A stretch of 64,000 nucleotides of DNA, taken from assembly GCA_025594325.1 (NCBI GenBank), contig JANHCV010000011.1, forward strand, positions 806,001-870,000, in the 5' to 3' direction. This DNA is from Blastocladiella emersonii ATCC 22665. Taxonomy: Eukaryota; Fungi; Blastocladiomycota. The translations under genes were made by a program, and so were the position numbers. The notes beneath the pieces were generated by a model, which was not told the origin of the DNA, did no database searches, and saw only the letters and a list, made by a program, of their open reading frames with translations. Shown in pieces: positions 5,066 through 49,529 of this stretch. How positions within the stretch are numbered: the first letter of the stretch is position 1; each line of letters starts with the position of its first letter.

Positions 5066-7322
5066 ATGTCCTCCTCGACCTCGCTCCCCCAGTCCCTGTC
5101 GCTGCGCGCCCTCAATACCCTCCTCGGTGGCAGCGGCAGCAGCGACGCCAACAACGCATCCGACCCTTCGCAGTCGCAGGACCAGCTCAAGGCCGCGGCC
5201 CTCGAGTCCTCGCTCGCCGCGCCGTCCGCGGCCAAGATCCTCAAGTCGAGCGTCGTCTCGCCGACGACGCCTGAGGCCCGCGACGAGCTCGCCGAAGTGG
5301 CGCCGCCGCACCCCATCTCGTCCTCGTCGCGGTCGGCGAGCAGCGAGAATCTCAAAGGTACGGGTAGCGCTCGGGGGAGACACGCGTGGTCGCTCACGAC
5401 TGCAAGAGTGTGTAGACGCCGCGACCAAGAAGCAGAACGGGGCCATCTCCACCATTTCGAGCGCGTTCAAGAACCTCAAGTTCAAGCGGTCGGGCGACGC
5501 GCTGAACGCGCGCGGCGGGTCGGCCGACGAGCTCGCCGGCACCGGCGGCGGGTCCGCGTCTGCGTCGACCCACGCGTCGCACGATGACCTTCGCGATGAC
5601 GCGGTGAAGCCGCCGCCGGCGCCGCTCCAGGCCGCCGCTGTCGCTCAACCTGCTGCGGCGGCCCCGGCGCCAGTGCTCCCCGCCGGCCTGCAGCGCACGA
5701 CGGCCGCGCACCTCGCCGCGCAGCTGACCACCTCGCCGTCGTCGGTCCTTGTCATCGACACACGGGCTCCCGACGAGTACGTCGTGTGCCACGCCGTCGG
5801 GAGCTTCAACGTGTTTGTCCCGCCGCTCCTGACGCGCCGGTGGGCCAAGAACGGCGGGTCGATGTCGGCCTCATCCCTGAGCGCCGCGACGGGCGCCGGC
5901 GGCGTGCTCGGCGGCGGCGCTGCCCCGCGCCGCATGTCGGCCAAGAGCATCAACCTCGAGGCGCTGGTCCTGCCCGAGTCGGAGCGCGACGCGTTCCGCA
6001 CGCGGCTCGCGGACGCGCCGAGCGTCGTGGTCCTCGACGCGTGCGACGCGGACCGCGCGGCACCGGGGACTGTCGTGTGGACCATCGCCAACGAGCTCGT
6101 CCATCCGGGCCGATCCGTCGCGACGCTCGAGGGCGGGTGGGCCGCGCTCGCCGCCGCGTGTCCCGCTGCGCTACTGTCAGACCCTGCCGCGGCCGCCGCG
6201 GACGCTGCTGCTGCGGTGACGAGCGACGCGCCTGCCGCGAACGGCGGTTTCGGCACGTCGTCGGCCACCTCGACGGCGCCGGGCACCCCTGGCGCGTCCG
6301 AGGACCCGGGCTCGGCGGGCCCGTTCAAACGCACCACGTCATTCACGCTCAAGACGACCAACCTGCGCGCGTCGATCTCGCGCCGCCCGCAGTTTGCCGC
6401 GGCGCTCGCTGTCTCGAGCGCGGGCGCCACGGGCGCGCCGGGCGGCGCTGACTCTGCTACCGCGTCGCCGGGTCTCGCGTCAACGCCCGCGAGTGCGCCG
6501 AGCGCGCTGCCCGCGGTGCCGATGGGCGGCGGCGGGCGCCGCGCGACGGTCGGGAACACGGCGCGGCCCGCGCCCAGCCTGCTCGCGGCGAACCAGCTCC
6601 AGGAGGAGGACGAGTCGCTCGCGTCGCCGCTGCCGCGGTCCGGGTCGCAGGCGCAGCAGGCGCAGCACACGTTCGCCGCGTCTCCGGCCGCTGCCCAAGC
6701 GCCGGCCGGCGAGACGCTCGACGAGGGCGAGCAGACGCCGCTGACGGACGACCCGACGACGCCCGCGTCGCTTGACCCGTCGCATATCATCGACGGTCTG
6801 TGGCTCGGCCCGGACCTGTTCGGGCACAACCCGGAGGCGGCGCGGGCGACGCTGGCGGCGATCGGGGTGGGCGCGGTGCTCAACATGGCGTTCGAGTGCG
6901 TGCCGCCGGCCGCCGCGGACCGGCCCGCGGTGTACAAGCAGATTGCGACGCAGGACTCGGCCGACGAGAAGATCGAGCTGGTGCTCAAGGAGGCCACGGC
7001 GTTCATCGACGAGGCACGGGAACAGAACCTCACCGTGTACGTGCACTGCAAGGCGGGCAAGTCGCGGTCCGCGACCGTCGTCATGGCGTACCTGATGATT
7101 TACCACGGGTTCTCGTTCGACCAGGCGTGGTCGCACGTCCGCACCCAGCGGCCGGCCGTTGCGCCGAACATTGGGTTCTTCTCGGTCCTCAAGGAGCTCG
7201 GCCAGAAGCCTCTGTCGGCCGTGGCCGCGGGGCTCGCGACGCCGTCCACGGCGGGCAGCAGCGGGTCCGGTTCGGCGGGCCCGGCTGCGAGTCCTGGCCG
7301 CCTTTCGCTGCGGATGCCGTAG
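5066..7322 (+). CDS. Dual-specificity (MAP kinase) phosphatase with rhodanese-like domain
   Basis: Rhodanese VLVIDTRAPDEYVVCHAVGSFNV...VATLEGGW. DSP signature VYVHCKAGKSRSATVVMAYLM...RPAVAPNIGF. Intron about 5359-5415. Confidence 0.92.
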
Positions 7323-42972: not shown

Positions 42973-44675
42973 TTACTACCACGTAGACGCTGGTCGCCTT
43001 TCGCACCCTACACACACACTCTCTCTCCACCAAACCATCAACATGCCCCGCACCACCTCCACCTCGTACACCCCTCGTCGCCGCTGGTCGGTGGTCGCGC
43101 TGGTCGCGCTGCTCGCGTTCGCGCTCCTCGGTTCCGCGCACGCCGCGCCGGCGTCGTCGGGCGAGTGGATCATCGAGTTCAAGAGCGACGCCGACATGGC
43201 GGCCGCCAAGAAGCTCGTGCTCGACTTTTACGCGTCCAAGGGCGTGGCGTCGATTGCGGCCGACCAGGCCGACGTCATCTCGATTGGCGACGGCTACCGC
43301 GCCATGACCATGCCCGCGGCGGACCCGGCGCTCAAGGCCGAGCTCACCAAGCTCGCCAACGTGTCGGCCGTCGAAAAGGAGGCCGAGTACAAGATCATGG
43401 GCACGCAGCGCAACGCGCCCGTCGGGCTTGATCGGATTGACGGCCGCCGCGGCACCGACGGCGCGTTCTCGTTCCCCGACAATGCCGGCCAGGGCGTCAC
43501 GGTCTACGTGATCGACACGGGCATCAACACGCAGCACCCGGACTTCCAGGGCCGCGCGCGGTTCCTGCAGGATTTCACGGGCGAGGGCAACAGCGACCAG
43601 CAGGGCCACGGGTCGCACTGCGCGGGCACCATCGGCGGCGCCACGTTTGGTGTCGCGAAAAAGGCGGACCTCGTCGCGCTCAAGGTGTTTGACCGGTCGG
43701 GCCGCGGGTCCAACACGGCGATCCTGCGCGCGCTGCAGGCCGTGTCGCAGGACGTGCAGCGCACGCGCAAGCCGTCGGTCGTGTCCATGTCGCTCGGCGG
43801 GCCGCGCGCGGGCGGCAACGGCGACAGCACCATGGCGCGCGCGATCCAGTCGCTGGTCCAGCAGGGCGTCAACGTGGTCGTGGCCGCGGGCAACGAGTCG
43901 CAGGACGCGTGCCGCGTGTCGCCGGCGTTCATCCCCGAGGCCATCACGGTCGGCGCGTCCGACCCGCGCAACGACCAGATCGCGTCCTTCTCCAACGTCG
44001 GCCGGTGCGTCGATATCGTCGCGCCCGGCGTCAACATCCAGTCGGTCGACGCCAAGTCGCGCGGGTCCAAGTCGCTCTCGGGCACGTCCATGGCCACGCC
44101 GCACGTCGCGGGCGTCGTCGCCGCGCTCCGGTCCATGGGCATGAGCGCGCAGCAGGCCCAGCAGAAGCTCCTCGCCGACGCCACGCCCAACGTCGTCAAG
44201 GGCAACCTGCGCGGCACCCCCAACAAGTTCCTGTTCATGGACCCCGCGCTCGCCAATGGCGGCGGGAACGGGAACGGCAACGGCGCGGGCCGCGGTGGCC
44301 AGCAGCCGGGTCGCGGTAACGGTAACGGCGGCAACGGCAACGGCGCCAACGACCCGCGCCAGGGCCAGCCCGGTCAGGGTCAGCCCGGCCAGGGCAACGG
44401 CGGGAACGGTGCTGGCCGCGGTGGAAACCAGAACGGCGGTGGCAACGGCGGCCGTGGTCAGCGCGACGGGAACCAGAACGGTGGGAGCGGGAACGGGAAC
44501 CAGCGCGGCGGCAACACCGGTAACGGTAACAACAACAACGGGTCGTGCGGCGCGCCGGCTCGCGCTCGCGCGCGCGGCGGCGTCACGTCCGTGACCAGCT
44601 TTGGCGACGAGGAGTAAGTCAGCAAAGTGTTTGCGCAGCAGGTCCTGCGCGATCACACCTCATAGTATCAATACA
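42973..44675 (+). repeat. Left arm of a 1,703-bp inverted repeat (partner 47827-49529)
   Basis: End points read by eye: the arm starts ttactaccacgtag and ends catagtatcaataca. ORF-track translations in several frames on both strands are identical between the two arms. Confidence 0.93.
43043..44617 (+). CDS. Secreted subtilisin-like serine protease (S8A/proteinase K type) with I9 propeptide and Gly/Asn/Gln-rich tail; copy 1
   Basis: Signal peptide WSVVALVALLAFALLGSAHA. Catalytic triad VIDTG / HGSHCAGT / GTSMATPHVAG; oxyanion AAGN. Intronless. Confidence 0.96.
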   Translation: MPRTTSTSYTPRRRWSVVALVALLAFALLGSAHAAPASSGEWIIEFKSDADMAAAKKLVLDFYASKGVASIAADQADVISIGDGYRAMTMPAADPALKAELTKLANVSAVEKEAEYKIMGTQRNAPVGLDRIDGRRGTDGAFSFPDNAGQGVTVYVIDTGINTQHPDFQGRARFLQDFTGEGNSDQQGHGSHCAGTIGGATFGVAKKADLVALKVFDRSGRGSNTAILRALQAVSQDVQRTRKPSVVSMSLGGPRAGGNGDSTMARAIQSLVQQGVNVVVAAGNESQDACRVSPAFIPEAITVGASDPRNDQIASFSNVGRCVDIVAPGVNIQSVDAKSRGSKSLSGTSMATPHVAGVVAALRSMGMSAQQAQQKLLADATPNVVKGNLRGTPNKFLFMDPALANGGGNGNGNGAGRGGQQPGRGNGNGGNGNGANDPRQGQPGQGQPGQGNGGNGAGRGGNQNGGGNGGRGQRDGNQNGGSGNGNQRGGNTGNGNNNNGSCGAPARARARGGVTSVTSFGDEE

Positions 44676-44735
44676 TCACATAATTAGTATCAATGCAATG
44701 TACATGGCGTCGTAACAGTTGGTTTTCCCCTTTGA

Positions 44736-46972
44736 ATTCACGCGAACAGTGCAGTATTCGATGAATGCGCACTTGCACTACACCGAGTTCGCGACGCCGT
44801 GCGGCGCGAGTCCGAGATCCTGGCCGAGACCGTGGCCATGGCGCCCTTCTACCTCGACCTCATCAAGGACGAGCCCGACCTCGAGTTCGACCAGGGCGTG
44901 ATCCGCATCATGTTCAACGCCGTGAGCCACTCCAACTCGGTAAGGGCCGGGCGGCCGTCCACGGGTCGCGAGGCCGAGTTCGTCAAGCGCGCCTACGAGA
45001 TCTACCCGGCGTCGGCTCGCCCAGCCGGTCGGCCCAAGCCGTCGCGCGACCGCCTCGGTCCTGCCCTTGATTTCGCTGCTGCGTCGTACTGGAACTCGGT
45101 CCGCCACACAGGCAAGAAGAAGGTGATGAAGTTCATCGGTGACCTGGCCGAGGCGCGCGTCCAGCGCAAGGAGGCGCTGTCTCGGACGCGCGCCTTGAAG
45201 GGCATGTCGCAGTCTTCGGTCTCGGGTCTCGGCCGCGGGTTCAAGAAGAAGTCGGCGCGCAACCGCGACTGGTACATGGAGCTGCGGCAGGTCAAGGCCG
45301 ACGCCAACGTGTACCGCGACCGCAACGAGCAGCCGTTTAGGCGCATGCAGCGGCTCGTCGACCTGGCCAAGCGCGACTTCGAGAACGGCCGCACCCTCCA
45401 CCTCATTGAGCCGCCGTCGCTCATCCCCATGCTCGGTGTCCGCCGCCGCACCATCGGCCTCGACATGAAGTCGCTGCGCAGCGTCATCCACCTGCCCGCG
45501 GTTAAGGCGCCGCCCGAGGAGAAGGCGCGCAAGGGCGAGACGCCCGAGGAGAAGGCCGCGCGCAGCGCCCGCATGAGCGCTGCGCACTGGGACCATCTCA
45601 TCGAGGCCCTCGACGGCGTGCTCAAGCCCAAGATCCTGCGCGACGCCGACGACAAGAACAAGTACCACGGCCTCATGTACACGGACGGCTACCTCGCCCG
45701 CGTCGTCTAGGTCAAGGGTGGTGTGCGCGTCAAGAAGGGCCATGGCAACAAGGCGTCGGCCAACGACGGGTCCAACAACGGGGAGGTGTCGGCGGCGACC
45801 TCGGCCAAGGACACCTTCCTGCGCTACAACAACTCGGGCAAGGCCATCTACTCGGAGCCGCGGTGCAAGCATTCGTCCGACGCGTCGGCCACCACGTTGG
45901 CCTCGTCGTTGCCGCCGGCACCGCCCAGCCCGCGCGCCGAGCTCAAGGTCCACTCGCTCAAGACGATCCACATCCCCGAGGGCAAGTACACGGTCTGGAT
46001 GGACCCCGGCGAGAACGACAACTTCACGGCGCTCAGCGTCGACCCCGAGCTGTTTGAGGCCCACGCTGAGCTCATGCGCCTCGTGCTCCGGGCCGCCGAG
46101 CTCGAGCGGGAGGCCGAGTTGCTCAAGGCCAAGCTCGCCGACCCCAAGCTCAAGCGCAAGTCCAGGTCGTTGGTGTCGTCGTCGTCGGTCGAGTCGCCCA
46201 ACGTCGAGATCATGCCCGAGGTCGCCAAGATTGCCCGCGAGGTCGTGTTGTTGGTCGTCCTCGAGAAGTTGCTGTCCCACTCGGTCTCGTCCAAGACGTA
46301 CCACCACCAGACGCTGCACGACAAGATGATCAAGCGTCGCGCCATGTGGCGCGAGGAGGCGGGCATGCCCGAGGAGGACCTCAAGCAGTCGCTCGCCGCT
46401 CGTGGAGACCTCAAGAAGTCGGCTGGTCGTGACTACGTCGCCCAGGCCAAGGCACTCTTTGAGAGCCTCGACAAGCGTTTCGCCGAGGAGTTCCACGACC
46501 GCCCGCCGCGCATGCGGTTCATGGTCGAGGCCCGCGGGCGCAGGTGGTGGTCCGAGCTCGCGTACTCGCTGCGCGACGCAGTCGTCATGGTCGGGTGCAA
46601 CCTACACGGTTTCGGCATGTCTCGTCCAAGCTGAAAGCGCCCGTCACGACCATCATCCGCGAGCTGCGCGCCGCCGGCATCCCCGTGTATCTGGTCGAGG
46701 AGAACTACTCGTCCAAGTGGTGCGCGGCGTGCTTCTTCGCTGGCTCTACGGCCGACAACGAGACCTTCAACCTCACGGGCAAGTCGTAAAAGACGCGGAC
46801 GTGCCACACGTGCGGCGTTCGGGTCCAGCGGGACCGCAACGCCGCGGTCAACATCTTCGGGTTCGCGCTCGGCCACTACCTCTTTGTCCGCGTCGCGCCT
46901 CAGCCTAAGTCCACGTCGTTGTCGTCGTCGTCGCCGCAGGTCTCGCCCTCCTCACTGTCGACTTCGTCCTGA
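44736..46972 (+). pseudogene. Fanzor1 (eukaryotic TnpB-family RNA-guided endonuclease), about 745 codons, disrupted by TAG 45708-45710, a 1-nt frameshift near 46620 and TAA 46787-46789
   Basis: WED-type motif YHGLMYTDG (45681). RuvC-I WMDPG (Asp 46002). VVMVG...SSKLKAP. RuvC-II VYLVEENYSSKWCAAC (Glu 46700). CHTC Zn pair. RuvC-III QRDRNAAVNIF (Asp 46832). Confidence 0.88.
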
Positions 46973-47019
46973 TCTGCCGCCGCCACCACCATCACCACCG
47001 TCTCTACGGTTTCTTCACG

Positions 47020-47180
47020 CGCACGTATCCGAAAGCGATGCAGCGCGTACGGTCCCGGGCGCGCCAAGTCCGCCGTGTGTGGAAAGCGCCCGCGACGCAA
47101 GGGCCTTTTGAGGCCGCGCGTCCTGACCACCGCGTGTGGTCGCCTCGCACCCAACGCGGTGTCTGGCGTCCACTCGTCTG
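47020..47180 (+). ncRNA. Candidate Fanzor omegaRNA scaffold / element right-end region
   Basis: Lies directly 3' of the Fanzor stop and contains several stems. GTATCC-GAAA-G(C)GATGC 47025-47041; GCGCGT...GCGCGC 47043-47064; GGCCT-TTTG-AGGCC 47102-47115; GACCAC-CGCGT-GTGGTC 47125-47141. The sequence becomes more AT-rich after about 47175. Boundaries are unknown. Confidence 0.45.
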
Positions 47181-47826
47181 TTCATTTCTTTGAGGAGTTG
47201 AGAATTGTGTTCTGCGTGTTGTTCATACTTAGAGTACAATGTCGGGTCTCCCTTTCGTTTTTGCGCTCCAACATGGCCATGGCACGCACTCATCCCTCCC
47301 CCACAACAAACGTAATACTCGTTATGGCTCTCTGCCACCGCAAATAACCTCCAACCTCAAAACCACATCGACTTCCTGTGATGAATGGGGAACGTCGTTC
47401 CGAGCACCAACGCGCTCAGGACGCGCTGGATCAGTTGCACGTGACCGCGTTGCGCCACACCTTTTCCCCACCGCTGCGCTGTGAGCAAGCGAAGGCTCAA
47501 TCGCCGTGCATTGTCCGCTCCCGCACCACTCAACGAGCCTCGCCGCGCATAACCATCGAGTGTTAGATTGATTCCAACAATCAGAATCCCATCACAGCGC
47601 GGCACCAGCTCCGCGGCTAGCCTACTTGCCGCTGCGGCGGCCACTACGCAGTCCACCACGAGCATCGATAAGAGGCGAGGGCGAGGGCGAGGCCTTCTTT
47701 TGACCAGCCGCGACCGACCGCGACTCGACTGACGGTGCATGTCTCATCTCCCCGGTTCACCTGACGGCCAAGCCCGTATTTGCAAATGAATCGCGTGCGG
47801 AGCTCGTGTCACATTACTATGATGGC

Positions 47827-49529
47827 TGTATTGATACTATGAGGTGTGATCGCGCAGGACCTGCTGCGCAAACACTTTGCTGACTTACTCCTCGTCGCCA
47901 AAGCTGGTCACGGACGTGACGCCGCCGCGCGCGCGAGCGCGAGCCGGCGCGCCGCACGACCCGTTGTTGTTGTTACCGTTACCGGTGTTGCCGCCGCGCT
48001 GGTTCCCGTTCCCGCTCCCACCGTTCTGGTTCCCGTCGCGCTGACCACGGCCGCCGTTGCCACCGCCGTTCTGGTTTCCACCGCGGCCAGCACCGTTCCC
48101 GCCGTTGCCCTGGCCGGGCTGACCCTGACCGGGCTGGCCCTGGCGCGGGTCGTTGGCGCCGTTGCCGTTGCCGCCGTTACCGTTACCGCGACCCGGCTGC
48201 TGGCCACCGCGGCCCGCGCCGTTGCCGTTCCCGTTCCCGCCGCCATTGGCGAGCGCGGGGTCCATGAACAGGAACTTGTTGGGGGTGCCGCGCAGGTTGC
48301 CCTTGACGACGTTGGGCGTGGCGTCGGCGAGGAGCTTCTGCTGGGCCTGCTGCGCGCTCATGCCCATGGACCGGAGCGCGGCGACGACGCCCGCGACGTG
48401 CGGCGTGGCCATGGACGTGCCCGAGAGCGACTTGGACCCGCGCGACTTGGCGTCGACCGACTGGATGTTGACGCCGGGCGCGACGATATCGACGCACCGG
48501 CCGACGTTGGAGAAGGACGCGATCTGGTCGTTGCGCGGGTCGGACGCGCCGACCGTGATGGCCTCGGGGATGAACGCCGGCGACACGCGGCACGCGTCCT
48601 GCGACTCGTTGCCCGCGGCCACGACCACGTTGACGCCCTGCTGGACCAGCGACTGGATCGCGCGCGCCATGGTGCTGTCGCCGTTGCCGCCCGCGCGCGG
48701 CCCGCCGAGCGACATGGACACGACCGACGGCTTGCGCGTGCGCTGCACGTCCTGCGACACGGCCTGCAGCGCGCGCAGGATCGCCGTGTTGGACCCGCGG
48801 CCCGACCGGTCAAACACCTTGAGCGCGACGAGGTCCGCCTTTTTCGCGACACCAAACGTGGCGCCGCCGATGGTGCCCGCGCAGTGCGACCCGTGGCCCT
48901 GCTGGTCGCTGTTGCCCTCGCCCGTGAAATCCTGCAGGAACCGCGCGCGGCCCTGGAAGTCCGGGTGCTGCGTGTTGATGCCCGTGTCGATCACGTAGAC
49001 CGTGACGCCCTGGCCGGCATTGTCGGGGAACGAGAACGCGCCGTCGGTGCCGCGGCGGCCGTCAATCCGATCAAGCCCGACGGGCGCGTTGCGCTGCGTG
49101 CCCATGATCTTGTACTCGGCCTCCTTTTCGACGGCCGACACGTTGGCGAGCTTGGTGAGCTCGGCCTTGAGCGCCGGGTCCGCCGCGGGCATGGTCATGG
49201 CGCGGTAGCCGTCGCCAATCGAGATGACGTCGGCCTGGTCGGCCGCAATCGACGCCACGCCCTTGGACGCGTAAAAGTCGAGCACGAGCTTCTTGGCGGC
49301 CGCCATGTCGGCGTCGCTCTTGAACTCGATGATCCACTCGCCCGACGACGCCGGCGCGGCGTGCGCGGAACCGAGGAGCGCGAACGCGAGCAGCGCGACC
49401 AGCGCGACCACCGACCAGCGGCGACGAGGGGTGTACGAGGTGGAGGTGGTGCGGGGCATGTTGATGGTTTGGTGGAGAGAGAGTGTGTGTGTAGGGTGCG
49501 AAAGGCGACCAGCGTCTACGTGGTAGTAA
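47827..49529 (-). repeat. Right arm of the 1,703-bp inverted repeat (partner 42973-44675)
   Basis: Reverse complement of the left arm, with the same end sequences and the same length. Confidence 0.93.
47885..49459 (-). CDS. Subtilisin-like serine protease, copy 2 (same 524-aa translation as copy 1)
   Basis: The ORF translation matches 43043-44617 residue for residue. Confidence 0.96.
   Translation of the reverse strand: MPRTTSTSYTPRRRWSVVALVALLAFALLGSAHAAPASSGEWIIEFKSDADMAAAKKLVLDFYASKGVASIAADQADVISIGDGYRAMTMPAADPALKAELTKLANVSAVEKEAEYKIMGTQRNAPVGLDRIDGRRGTDGAFSFPDNAGQGVTVYVIDTGINTQHPDFQGRARFLQDFTGEGNSDQQGHGSHCAGTIGGATFGVAKKADLVALKVFDRSGRGSNTAILRALQAVSQDVQRTRKPSVVSMSLGGPRAGGNGDSTMARAIQSLVQQGVNVVVAAGNESQDACRVSPAFIPEAITVGASDPRNDQIASFSNVGRCVDIVAPGVNIQSVDAKSRGSKSLSGTSMATPHVAGVVAALRSMGMSAQQAQQKLLADATPNVVKGNLRGTPNKFLFMDPALANGGGNGNGNGAGRGGQQPGRGNGNGGNGNGANDPRQGQPGQGQPGQGNGGNGAGRGGNQNGGGNGGRGQRDGNQNGGSGNGNQRGGNTGNGNNNNGSCGAPARARARGGVTSVTSFGDEE

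Follow-up and report, generated by a model that had tools for sequence, protein, structure and literature searches.

What did the broken reading frame at locus H9P43_008291 of the zoosporic fungus Blastocladiella emersonii ATCC 22665 (assembly GCA_025594325.1, contig JANHCV010000011.1) once encode, and is it still a gene? Among the TnpB/Cas12 RNA-guided RuvC endonucleases, Fanzor1 proteins form the eukaryotic branch; they are compact, and they are relevant both to genome editing and to the move of TnpB into eukaryotes. An initial annotation of the 64-kb stretch of DNA that holds the locus (the window, to which our coordinates refer; GC content 68.6%) had proposed that a near full-length Fanzor1 lies hidden there. 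We find, with a probability that we put at about 90%, that positions 44838-46972 are a recently inactivated Fanzor1 gene copy.

The coding frame runs on the plus strand from the ATG at 44838 to the TGA ending at 46972, is broken three times and would give, if read through, a product of ∼711 amino acids (aa). The ATG at 44838 is the earliest in frame and is also where the GenBank model begins, and it is likely to be the start, not the GTG at 44799. The layout described in the initial annotation was confirmed in the sequence: the open reading frames (ORFs) 44799-45710 and 45723-46634 lie in a common frame, parted only by the TAG at 45708-45710; a shift of 1 nucleotide (nt) near 46620, where other copies have an extra G after 46618, leads into the frame of the ORF 46544-46789; and the shifted frame runs past the TAA at 46787-46789 to the TGA at 46970-46972. 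All of the motifs it had listed in the stitched protein were also found (PSLIPML..IGLD, YHGLMYTDG, WMDPG, VVMVG, SSKLKAP, VEENYSSKWCAAC, CHTC and RDRNAAVNIF). The segments and lesions are as follows, with the evidence in brackets; L001 and L002 are the nearest other copies in the genome, and the read evidence consists of Logan contigs for this organism, drawn from three public DNA runs (X1, X2 and X3).

44838..45707, plus strand: first open segment, a variable N-terminus and then the WED/REC region with TDG (ORF list, sequence, GenBank start, paralogue alignment).
45708..45710, plus strand: lesion 1, an in-frame TAG that is TAC (Tyr) in paralogues (C at 45710 in L001 and in X2 and X3 contigs).
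45711..46618, plus strand: second open segment, with the KGGVR strand, RuvC-I WMDPG, long REC2 helices and VVMVGCNLHGFG (phmmer relatives, family alignments).
46618..46619, plus strand: lesion 2, a 1-nt deletion in which one G of CATGGTC is gone and the frame shifts (L001, L002 and contigs of all three runs have the extra G).
46620..46786, plus strand: third segment, in the shifted frame, with SSKLKAP, the alternative RuvC-II glutamate and the first CxxC (PF07282 match, ExxxxxxCxxC spacing).
46787..46789, plus strand: lesion 3, an in-frame TAA between the two CxxC pairs that is TAC (Tyr) in paralogues (C at 46789 in L001, L002 and read contigs).
46790..46972, plus strand: fourth segment, with the second CxxC, RuvC-III QRDRNAAVNI, a Ser-rich tail and the TGA stop (PF07282, NCBIfam guided_TnpB, TnpB alignment).

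When the central 307 aa were searched exhaustively with phmmer against 1.84 billion representative proteins, six matches were returned, all from B. emersonii, and no sequence relative of this region was detected in any other species. Four more came from further searches, and all ten are hypothetical proteins of B. emersonii ATCC 22665 (GCA_025594325.1): P0010, which is the GenBank annotation of the window locus itself, and the paralogues P0001 to P0009 (H9P43_003446, H9P43_002144, H9P43_007593, H9P43_004874, H9P43_004653, H9P43_002944, H9P43_001850, H9P43_000824 and H9P43_007589, in that order). Word-indexed homologue searches likewise gave no protein outside B. emersonii, and a scan of IMG/VR viral contigs with family patterns revealed no relative. 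The four pieces of the reading frame align in order with the nine paralogous proteins, far beyond chance. In TBLASTN analyses, residues 164-303 of the first segment aligned with the paralogue loci L003, L004 and L006 (E 3e-14 to 1e-5), piece B with L004 (E 7e-24), piece C with L003 (E 6e-17) and piece D with L006 (E 7e-13). Across the lesions, P0001 reads ARVVYVKGG at the site of the TAG, the extra G present after 46618 in every other copy restores ...GFGMVSSKLKAP, and P0001 and P0002 read GKSYKTRTC at the site of the TAA.

P0001 and P0002 are 84-89% identical to the window copy in protein and 92-95% in DNA; L001 is 92% identical to 45304-47094 and L002 is 95% identical to 46185-∼47239. Both of these loci are 5′-truncated. 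Of the copies seen, only that in the window retains the first 470 nt of the gene of this subfamily, and the full N-terminus is one of the two main things that make this dead copy of value. Intact paralogues, for which the initial annotation had suggested searching, do exist in the genome: P0004 (H9P43_004874) is a single, uninterrupted ORF of 639 aa with all catalytic residues, and paralogues of this kind would be useful experimental targets. The Fanzor fragment P0009 lies four locus-tag numbers from P0003 and, by locus tag, on the same contig.

Fanzors are defined by a DPG at RuvC-I and by a glutamate relocated to six residues before the zinc finger, and Fanzor1 is set apart by insertions in REC, a TDG within the WED domain and a size of 600-800 aa (Yoon et al. 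2023, PMC10711439); a Fanzor motif D-X(125,275)-[TS][TS]-X-X-C4-X(5,50)-RD has also been described (Bao and Jurka 2013, PMC3627910). The window copy has DPG within WMDPG (D at 46002-46004). The initial annotation had recognized the D-E-D RuvC plus CxxC...CxxC architecture of TnpB and Fanzor, and the motifs and the ordered PF07282 matches bear this out; the assignment of the RuvC-I aspartate is refined, since it is the D of WMDPG and not that of IGLD. The alternative RuvC-II glutamate stands six residues before the first CxxC, as E(46700-46702)-NYSSKW-CAAC (CAAC at 46721-46732), and is invariant across the family alignment; the canonical glutamate position is a glycine in the window copy (VVMVGCN). 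The zinc ribbon and RuvC-III follow as SS-KW-CAAC...CHTC-GVRVQ-RD, with ∼235 residues between D and SS, the second CxxC (CHTC) at 46802-46813 and the RuvC-III D at 46832-46834, the ribbon being interrupted by the TAA. A TDG is present as YTDGY at 45678-45692 (T-D-G at 45681-45689), and P0001 and P0003-P0008 have TDG or TNG at this conserved position. RuvC-I varies within the family: P0003 has DPS and the P0006 subfamily DAG (P0003 and P0006-P0009 being listed as deviating), although Fanzors have been described as having DPG almost without exception.

Profile searches gave a consistent picture. PF07282 (Cas12f1-like TNB zinc ribbon) matched the third piece over profile positions 10-35 (E 1.5e-3, 19.1 bits) and the fourth over positions 42-60 (E 1.8e-4, 22.1 bits), each piece alone falling below the cut-off of 26.3 bits; all six paralogues tested (P0001-P0006) scored above the gathering threshold, with 28.6-41.9 bits. 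NCBIfam guided_TnpB matched the fourth piece (E 1e-3), and the D of QRDRNAAVNI aligns with the catalytic D361 of ISDra2 TnpB (8bf8). Searched against PDB sequences, the family profile reached the C-termini of TnpB, TranC and mimivirus Fanzor2 (E 1e-4 to 0.05) and that of Cas12f; for pieces B and C, searches of the same sequences with the single piece were of no use. The basic patches that had been proposed as possible nuclear localisation signals lie in non-conserved insertions.

We next consider the predicted structure of P0004. The full-length AlphaFold model had a mean predicted local distance difference test score (pLDDT) of 49.7, with a low-confidence N-terminal half, and its weak matches were almost only to Fanzor, Cas12 and TnpB structures. 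When the C-terminal 300 residues were modelled alone (pLDDT 77; predicted template modelling score, pTM, 0.70), a RuvC fold was obtained, with these matches:

SpuFz (Fanzor1): Foldseek E 6.6e-6 to 3.6e-5, ranks 1-3; VIA-align Z 12.5.
PpFz (Fanzor1): Foldseek E 5.5e-4; VIA-align Z 10.6.
CasPhi: Foldseek E 1.9e-2 to 5.1e-2; VIA-align Z 10.2.
TnpB: Foldseek E 2.1e-3; VIA-align Z 9.7.
GtFz (Fanzor1): Foldseek E 3.1e-3; VIA-align Z 8.6.
Mimivirus Fanzor2: Foldseek E 4.4e-3, rank 27; absent among the top 50 VIA-align matches.

The first five VIA-align ranks are all SpuFz or PpFz (Z 12.5 to 10.6) and the best non-Fanzor has Z 10.2; the best non-Fanzor Foldseek match has E 2.4e-4. The P0004 model thus combines a RuvC domain with long kinked REC2 helices and is nearest to solved Fanzor1 structures. 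AlphaFold DB cluster matches are TNB-domain proteins, and the ESM Atlas neighbours carry PF07282. Structure prediction had been named in the initial annotation as a check, the lack of a RuvC fold being what would speak against its claim; the fold is present in this model, with SpuFz as the best match. Taken with the DPG, the relocated glutamate, the C4 ribbon, the RuvC-III RD, the TDG and the length of ∼711 aa, the paralogue's fold supports the proposed Fanzor1 identity.

SpuFz1 from Spizellomyces punctatus (PDB 8GKH, 9CEU and 9CEY), whose host is likewise a zoosporic fungus, is the best structural match to the C-terminal half of the family (Z 12.5 over ∼225 residues, Foldseek E 6.6e-6). It has the RuvC-REC2-TNB architecture in common with the family, and the DPG, alternative glutamate, TDG and C4 zinc ribbon in common with the window copy. 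However, the identity between SpuFz1 and the P0004 model is 14-17% in the structural alignment, with no sequence-profile match, and the window copy, unlike SpuFz1, is a pseudogene, with neither terminal inverted repeats nor a transposon context detected. Allomyces and Blastocladiella belong to the same phylum, Blastocladiomycota. Fanzor1 was reported from fungi in 2013, including three families from Allomyces macrogynus, the AMa elements (Bao and Jurka 2013, PMC3627910). These share with the window copy the D-X(125,275)-[TS][TS]-X-X-C4-X(5,50)-RD motif and a variable N-terminus, but any kinship would be distant, the phmmer search with the central 307 aa having found only B. emersonii proteins. 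Prokaryotic TnpB (ISDra2, PDB 8BF8/8EXA) and Cas12f share the RuvC fold, the zinc ribbon and the C-terminal CxxCG...RDxNAAxNI; TnpB differs in its canonical glutamate ∼50 residues before the zinc finger, a D-hydrophobic-G at RuvC-I, a length of ∼400 aa and the lack of a TDG (PMC10711439). Fanzor and Blastocladiella were not mentioned together in the literature searched. Fanzor1 as such is already known in fungi, and the window copy adds a new member to a known family. The description of the locus as a new, divergent Fanzor1 stands in that it is a member of a very divergent Fanzor1 family, which it adds from the Blastocladiomycota; it is amended in that this copy is a pseudogene, not a working gene, and one of about ten paralogues.

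The state of this copy was judged from the other copies and from the reads. L001 and L002 (where they cover the sites) and the read contigs, which reveal additional copies, have the intact state at all three lesion sites (C at 45710, the extra G and C at 46789), so that the lesions are derived and private to the window copy. The TAG at 45708-45710, with the window's G at 45710, is carried by a single-copy-depth contig of run X1. In the region common to the three copies, L001 and L002 agree against the window at 24 sites, at 14 of which the window has a C to T or G to A change. The ratio of nonsynonymous to synonymous substitution rates (dN/dS) is 0.89 for the window copy versus L001 and 0.73 versus L002, compared with 0.51 for L001 versus L002; values of 0.7-0.9 against the nearest copies are those of a decaying pseudogene in near-neutral drift. 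With two in-frame stops, one frameshift and this dN/dS, the frame is neither uninterrupted nor under evident purifying selection, and since it is broken three times and drifting neutrally, no working nuclease is to be expected from this copy. The GC content at third codon positions (GC3) of the Fanzor ORF, 0.92-0.93, equals that of the adjacent host subtilisin gene, and the sequence is therefore a long-term resident of the genome. At 45006, 45014, 45286, 45306 and 45324, run X2 contigs of single-copy depth differ from the window and run X1 agrees with it; these differences could be allelic or strain variation in one sample, or noise.

Some results weigh against the locus being an inactivated Fanzor1 copy. 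The fold was tested on a paralogue (P0004, residues 340-639) that is 30-38% identical to the window copy; SpuFz was not found by the family profile search of PDB sequences and was matched by fold only; positions 46507-46837 are covered by paralogue-type read contigs only, so that the assembly is the sole source of the frameshift and the TAA; and RNA folding of the non-coding region 3′ of the stop, which we discuss below as a candidate omega RNA scaffold, gave z scores of -1.0 to -1.5 over several spans, no better than shuffled sequence. The missing profile match to SpuFz, set beside those to TnpB, TranC and mimivirus Fanzor2, raises the possibility that the relic belongs to the TnpB superfamily without being Fanzor1, either as a Fanzor2 or as part of a separate eukaryotic or giant-virus lineage that merely resembles Fanzor1. 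The nearest ESM Atlas clusters, which are mostly from Nucleocytoviricota and carry DUF8286, and the DAG or DPS of some paralogues point the same way. Nevertheless we consider this very unlikely, since Fanzor1 is favoured by the TDG motif and the size as well as by the long REC2 helices and the best structural matches, with SpuFz and PpFz filling the top five VIA-align places and mimivirus Fanzor2 outside the top 50 and 27th by Foldseek, and since neither a DUF8286 match (in the window pieces or P0001-P0006) nor an IMG/VR relative was detected.

The lesions, too, admit of other explanations, one of which is embodied in the GenBank record. There the locus is a hypothetical protein of 625 aa (P0010; L007 and L008, the sequence around it, are exact substrings of the window), starting at 44838, stopping at the TAA at 46789 and containing two introns:

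45702-45734, plus strand: annotated intron 1, 33 nt, GT..AG, holding the TAG (GenBank model H9P43_008291).
46590-46630, plus strand: annotated intron 2, 41 nt, GT..AG, holding the frameshift (GenBank model H9P43_008291).

These introns delete the family-conserved residues VVYVKGGVRVK and VGCNLHGFGMVSS (VGxNxxGFGxxS in alignments). Because both remove residues kept in every paralogue, we regard them as gene-prediction artefacts laid over a broken frame, and the Fanzor1 was accordingly hidden only in part, GenBank already holding the locus as a hypothetical protein. That the model is correct and describes a live, spliced gene is extremely unlikely: it does give GT...AG boundaries and an open product, but the introns measure only 33 and 41 nt, both stretches are coding in the paralogues, and the stop codon of the model, TAC in other copies, cuts off the second CxxC and the aspartate of RuvC-III, which is why P0010 has no Pfam match; a dN/dS near 1 also speaks against it. 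There is also a slim chance that the organism has an intact gene and that long-read assembly errors account for the lesions. The 1-nt deletion falls in a GG dinucleotide, and neither it nor the TAA appears in any Logan contig from the three runs; against this, the TAG is found in the X1 contig mentioned above, two of the three lesions are substitutions, an unusual kind of assembly error, and the window copy has many further private changes, mostly G/C to A/T, together with its dN/dS of 0.7-0.9. We therefore retain the interpretation of an inactivated Fanzor1 copy, and the locus is a clear example of an automatic gene model that invents introns and thereby hides a pseudogene.

The element to which this gene copy belonged can be delimited in part, from the following features:

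46973..47230, plus strand: conserved non-coding 3′ region to the probable right end (...GTGTTGTTCATACTT); candidate omega RNA scaffold by analogy (homology, read depth).
44790..44837, plus strand: upstream 48 nt, which with the ATG also occur at another locus; possible left edge of the repeat (read contig breaks).

Homology continues past the stop to 47097 in L001, to 47176 in one read contig and to ∼47230-47239 in L002, giving a conserved stretch of ∼258 nt. Read depth is 4-5 times single copy over 46756-47251, and 44842-45306 is single copy at a likeness of at least 88%, so that copies of the element are biased to its 3′ end. The P0006 subfamily (P0006, P0007 and P0008; L006, L010 and L009; 88-96% alike) has a sharp common right end 262 nt past the stop, ...CCAATTTTTGTTGTTTGATT (L006 5960-6222, L009 ∼6677-6935 and L010 ∼5342-5605), beyond which the flanks are unrelated. 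This similar T-rich terminus supports a right end near 47230 in the window copy, which we consider probable. On the left, a 52-nt piece (44790-44841) that holds the presumed start codon recurs elsewhere in the genome, where neither flank is the same: at 44790 read contigs break off into a foreign left flank, and one contig diverges after 44841. Positions 44790-44837 may thus be the left edge of the repeat. The upstream flank of L002 has a short likeness to the right end of the element that goes no further and was taken as chance, and four apparent copies starting near 46914 were set aside as unreliable because of a GTC microsatellite at that spot.

No terminal inverted repeats were found in 44640-47860, and none of the annotated genes within 10 kb is a transposase, in agreement with the earlier observation that the window has no partner transposase. 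Carriage by a transposon, as judged by terminal inverted repeats, target-site duplications or a partner transposase, is thus not evident here; Fanzor1 without transposon features is common, and transposon carriage is not a strict criterion for the group (Bao and Jurka 2013, PMC3627910). A retroposed (processed) origin of the 5′-truncated copies was ruled out, as they have no poly(A) at their 3′ ends. The gene common to the sequences downstream of L002 and L004 encodes a low-complexity Q/A/P-rich protein and not a transposase. The Q/A/P-rich repeat genes at L002 6906-8060 (minus strand) and L004 8109-9329 (minus strand) are ∼84% alike in DNA and are probably members of a repeat-protein family, not partner genes. 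A gene with a weak Plavaka transposase domain match was observed at L003 301-1527, 2.5 kb upstream of P0003.

By analogy with SpuFz1, the ancestral protein of ∼711 aa would have bound an omega RNA derived from the 3′ end of the gene plus the ∼258 nt to the right end, and would then have cut double-stranded DNA matching the guide by means of the triad formed by D (WMDPG), the relocated E (EENYSSKWC) and D (QRDRNAAVNI), together with the C4 zinc ribbon. RNA-guided cutting by the ancestral protein is what we infer from this comparison, and the omega RNA from the 3′ end is a candidate on the same footing; Rfam gave no match in the 3′ region.

The Fanzor relic sits in a unique loop of 3151 nt between the arms of a long palindrome:

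42973..44675, plus strand: left arm of a perfect inverted repeat of 1703 nt, with a Peptidase_S8 (subtilisin) gene (100% complementary pair; PF00082).
47827..49529, minus strand: right arm, with a second, convergent Peptidase_S8 gene (100% complementary pair; PF00082).

The analysis of the locus revealed nothing that ties the Fanzor causally to the palindrome. One might picture the family as a lineage-restricted clade that multiplies without a transposase by way of its 3′ end, and the palindrome as a possible scar of break repair at such an element; the shared T-rich right end ∼260 nt past the stop, the 4-5-fold depth of the 3′ part and the ragged 5′ breakpoints fit this idea, which we regard as speculative and very unlikely. 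If it were true, copying of the element might begin from its omega RNA end, a mode that the pattern would fit. As for the arms themselves, their Peptidase_S8 genes are identical and have Gly/Asn/Gln-rich tails, and a weaker homology (76%) goes on beyond them.

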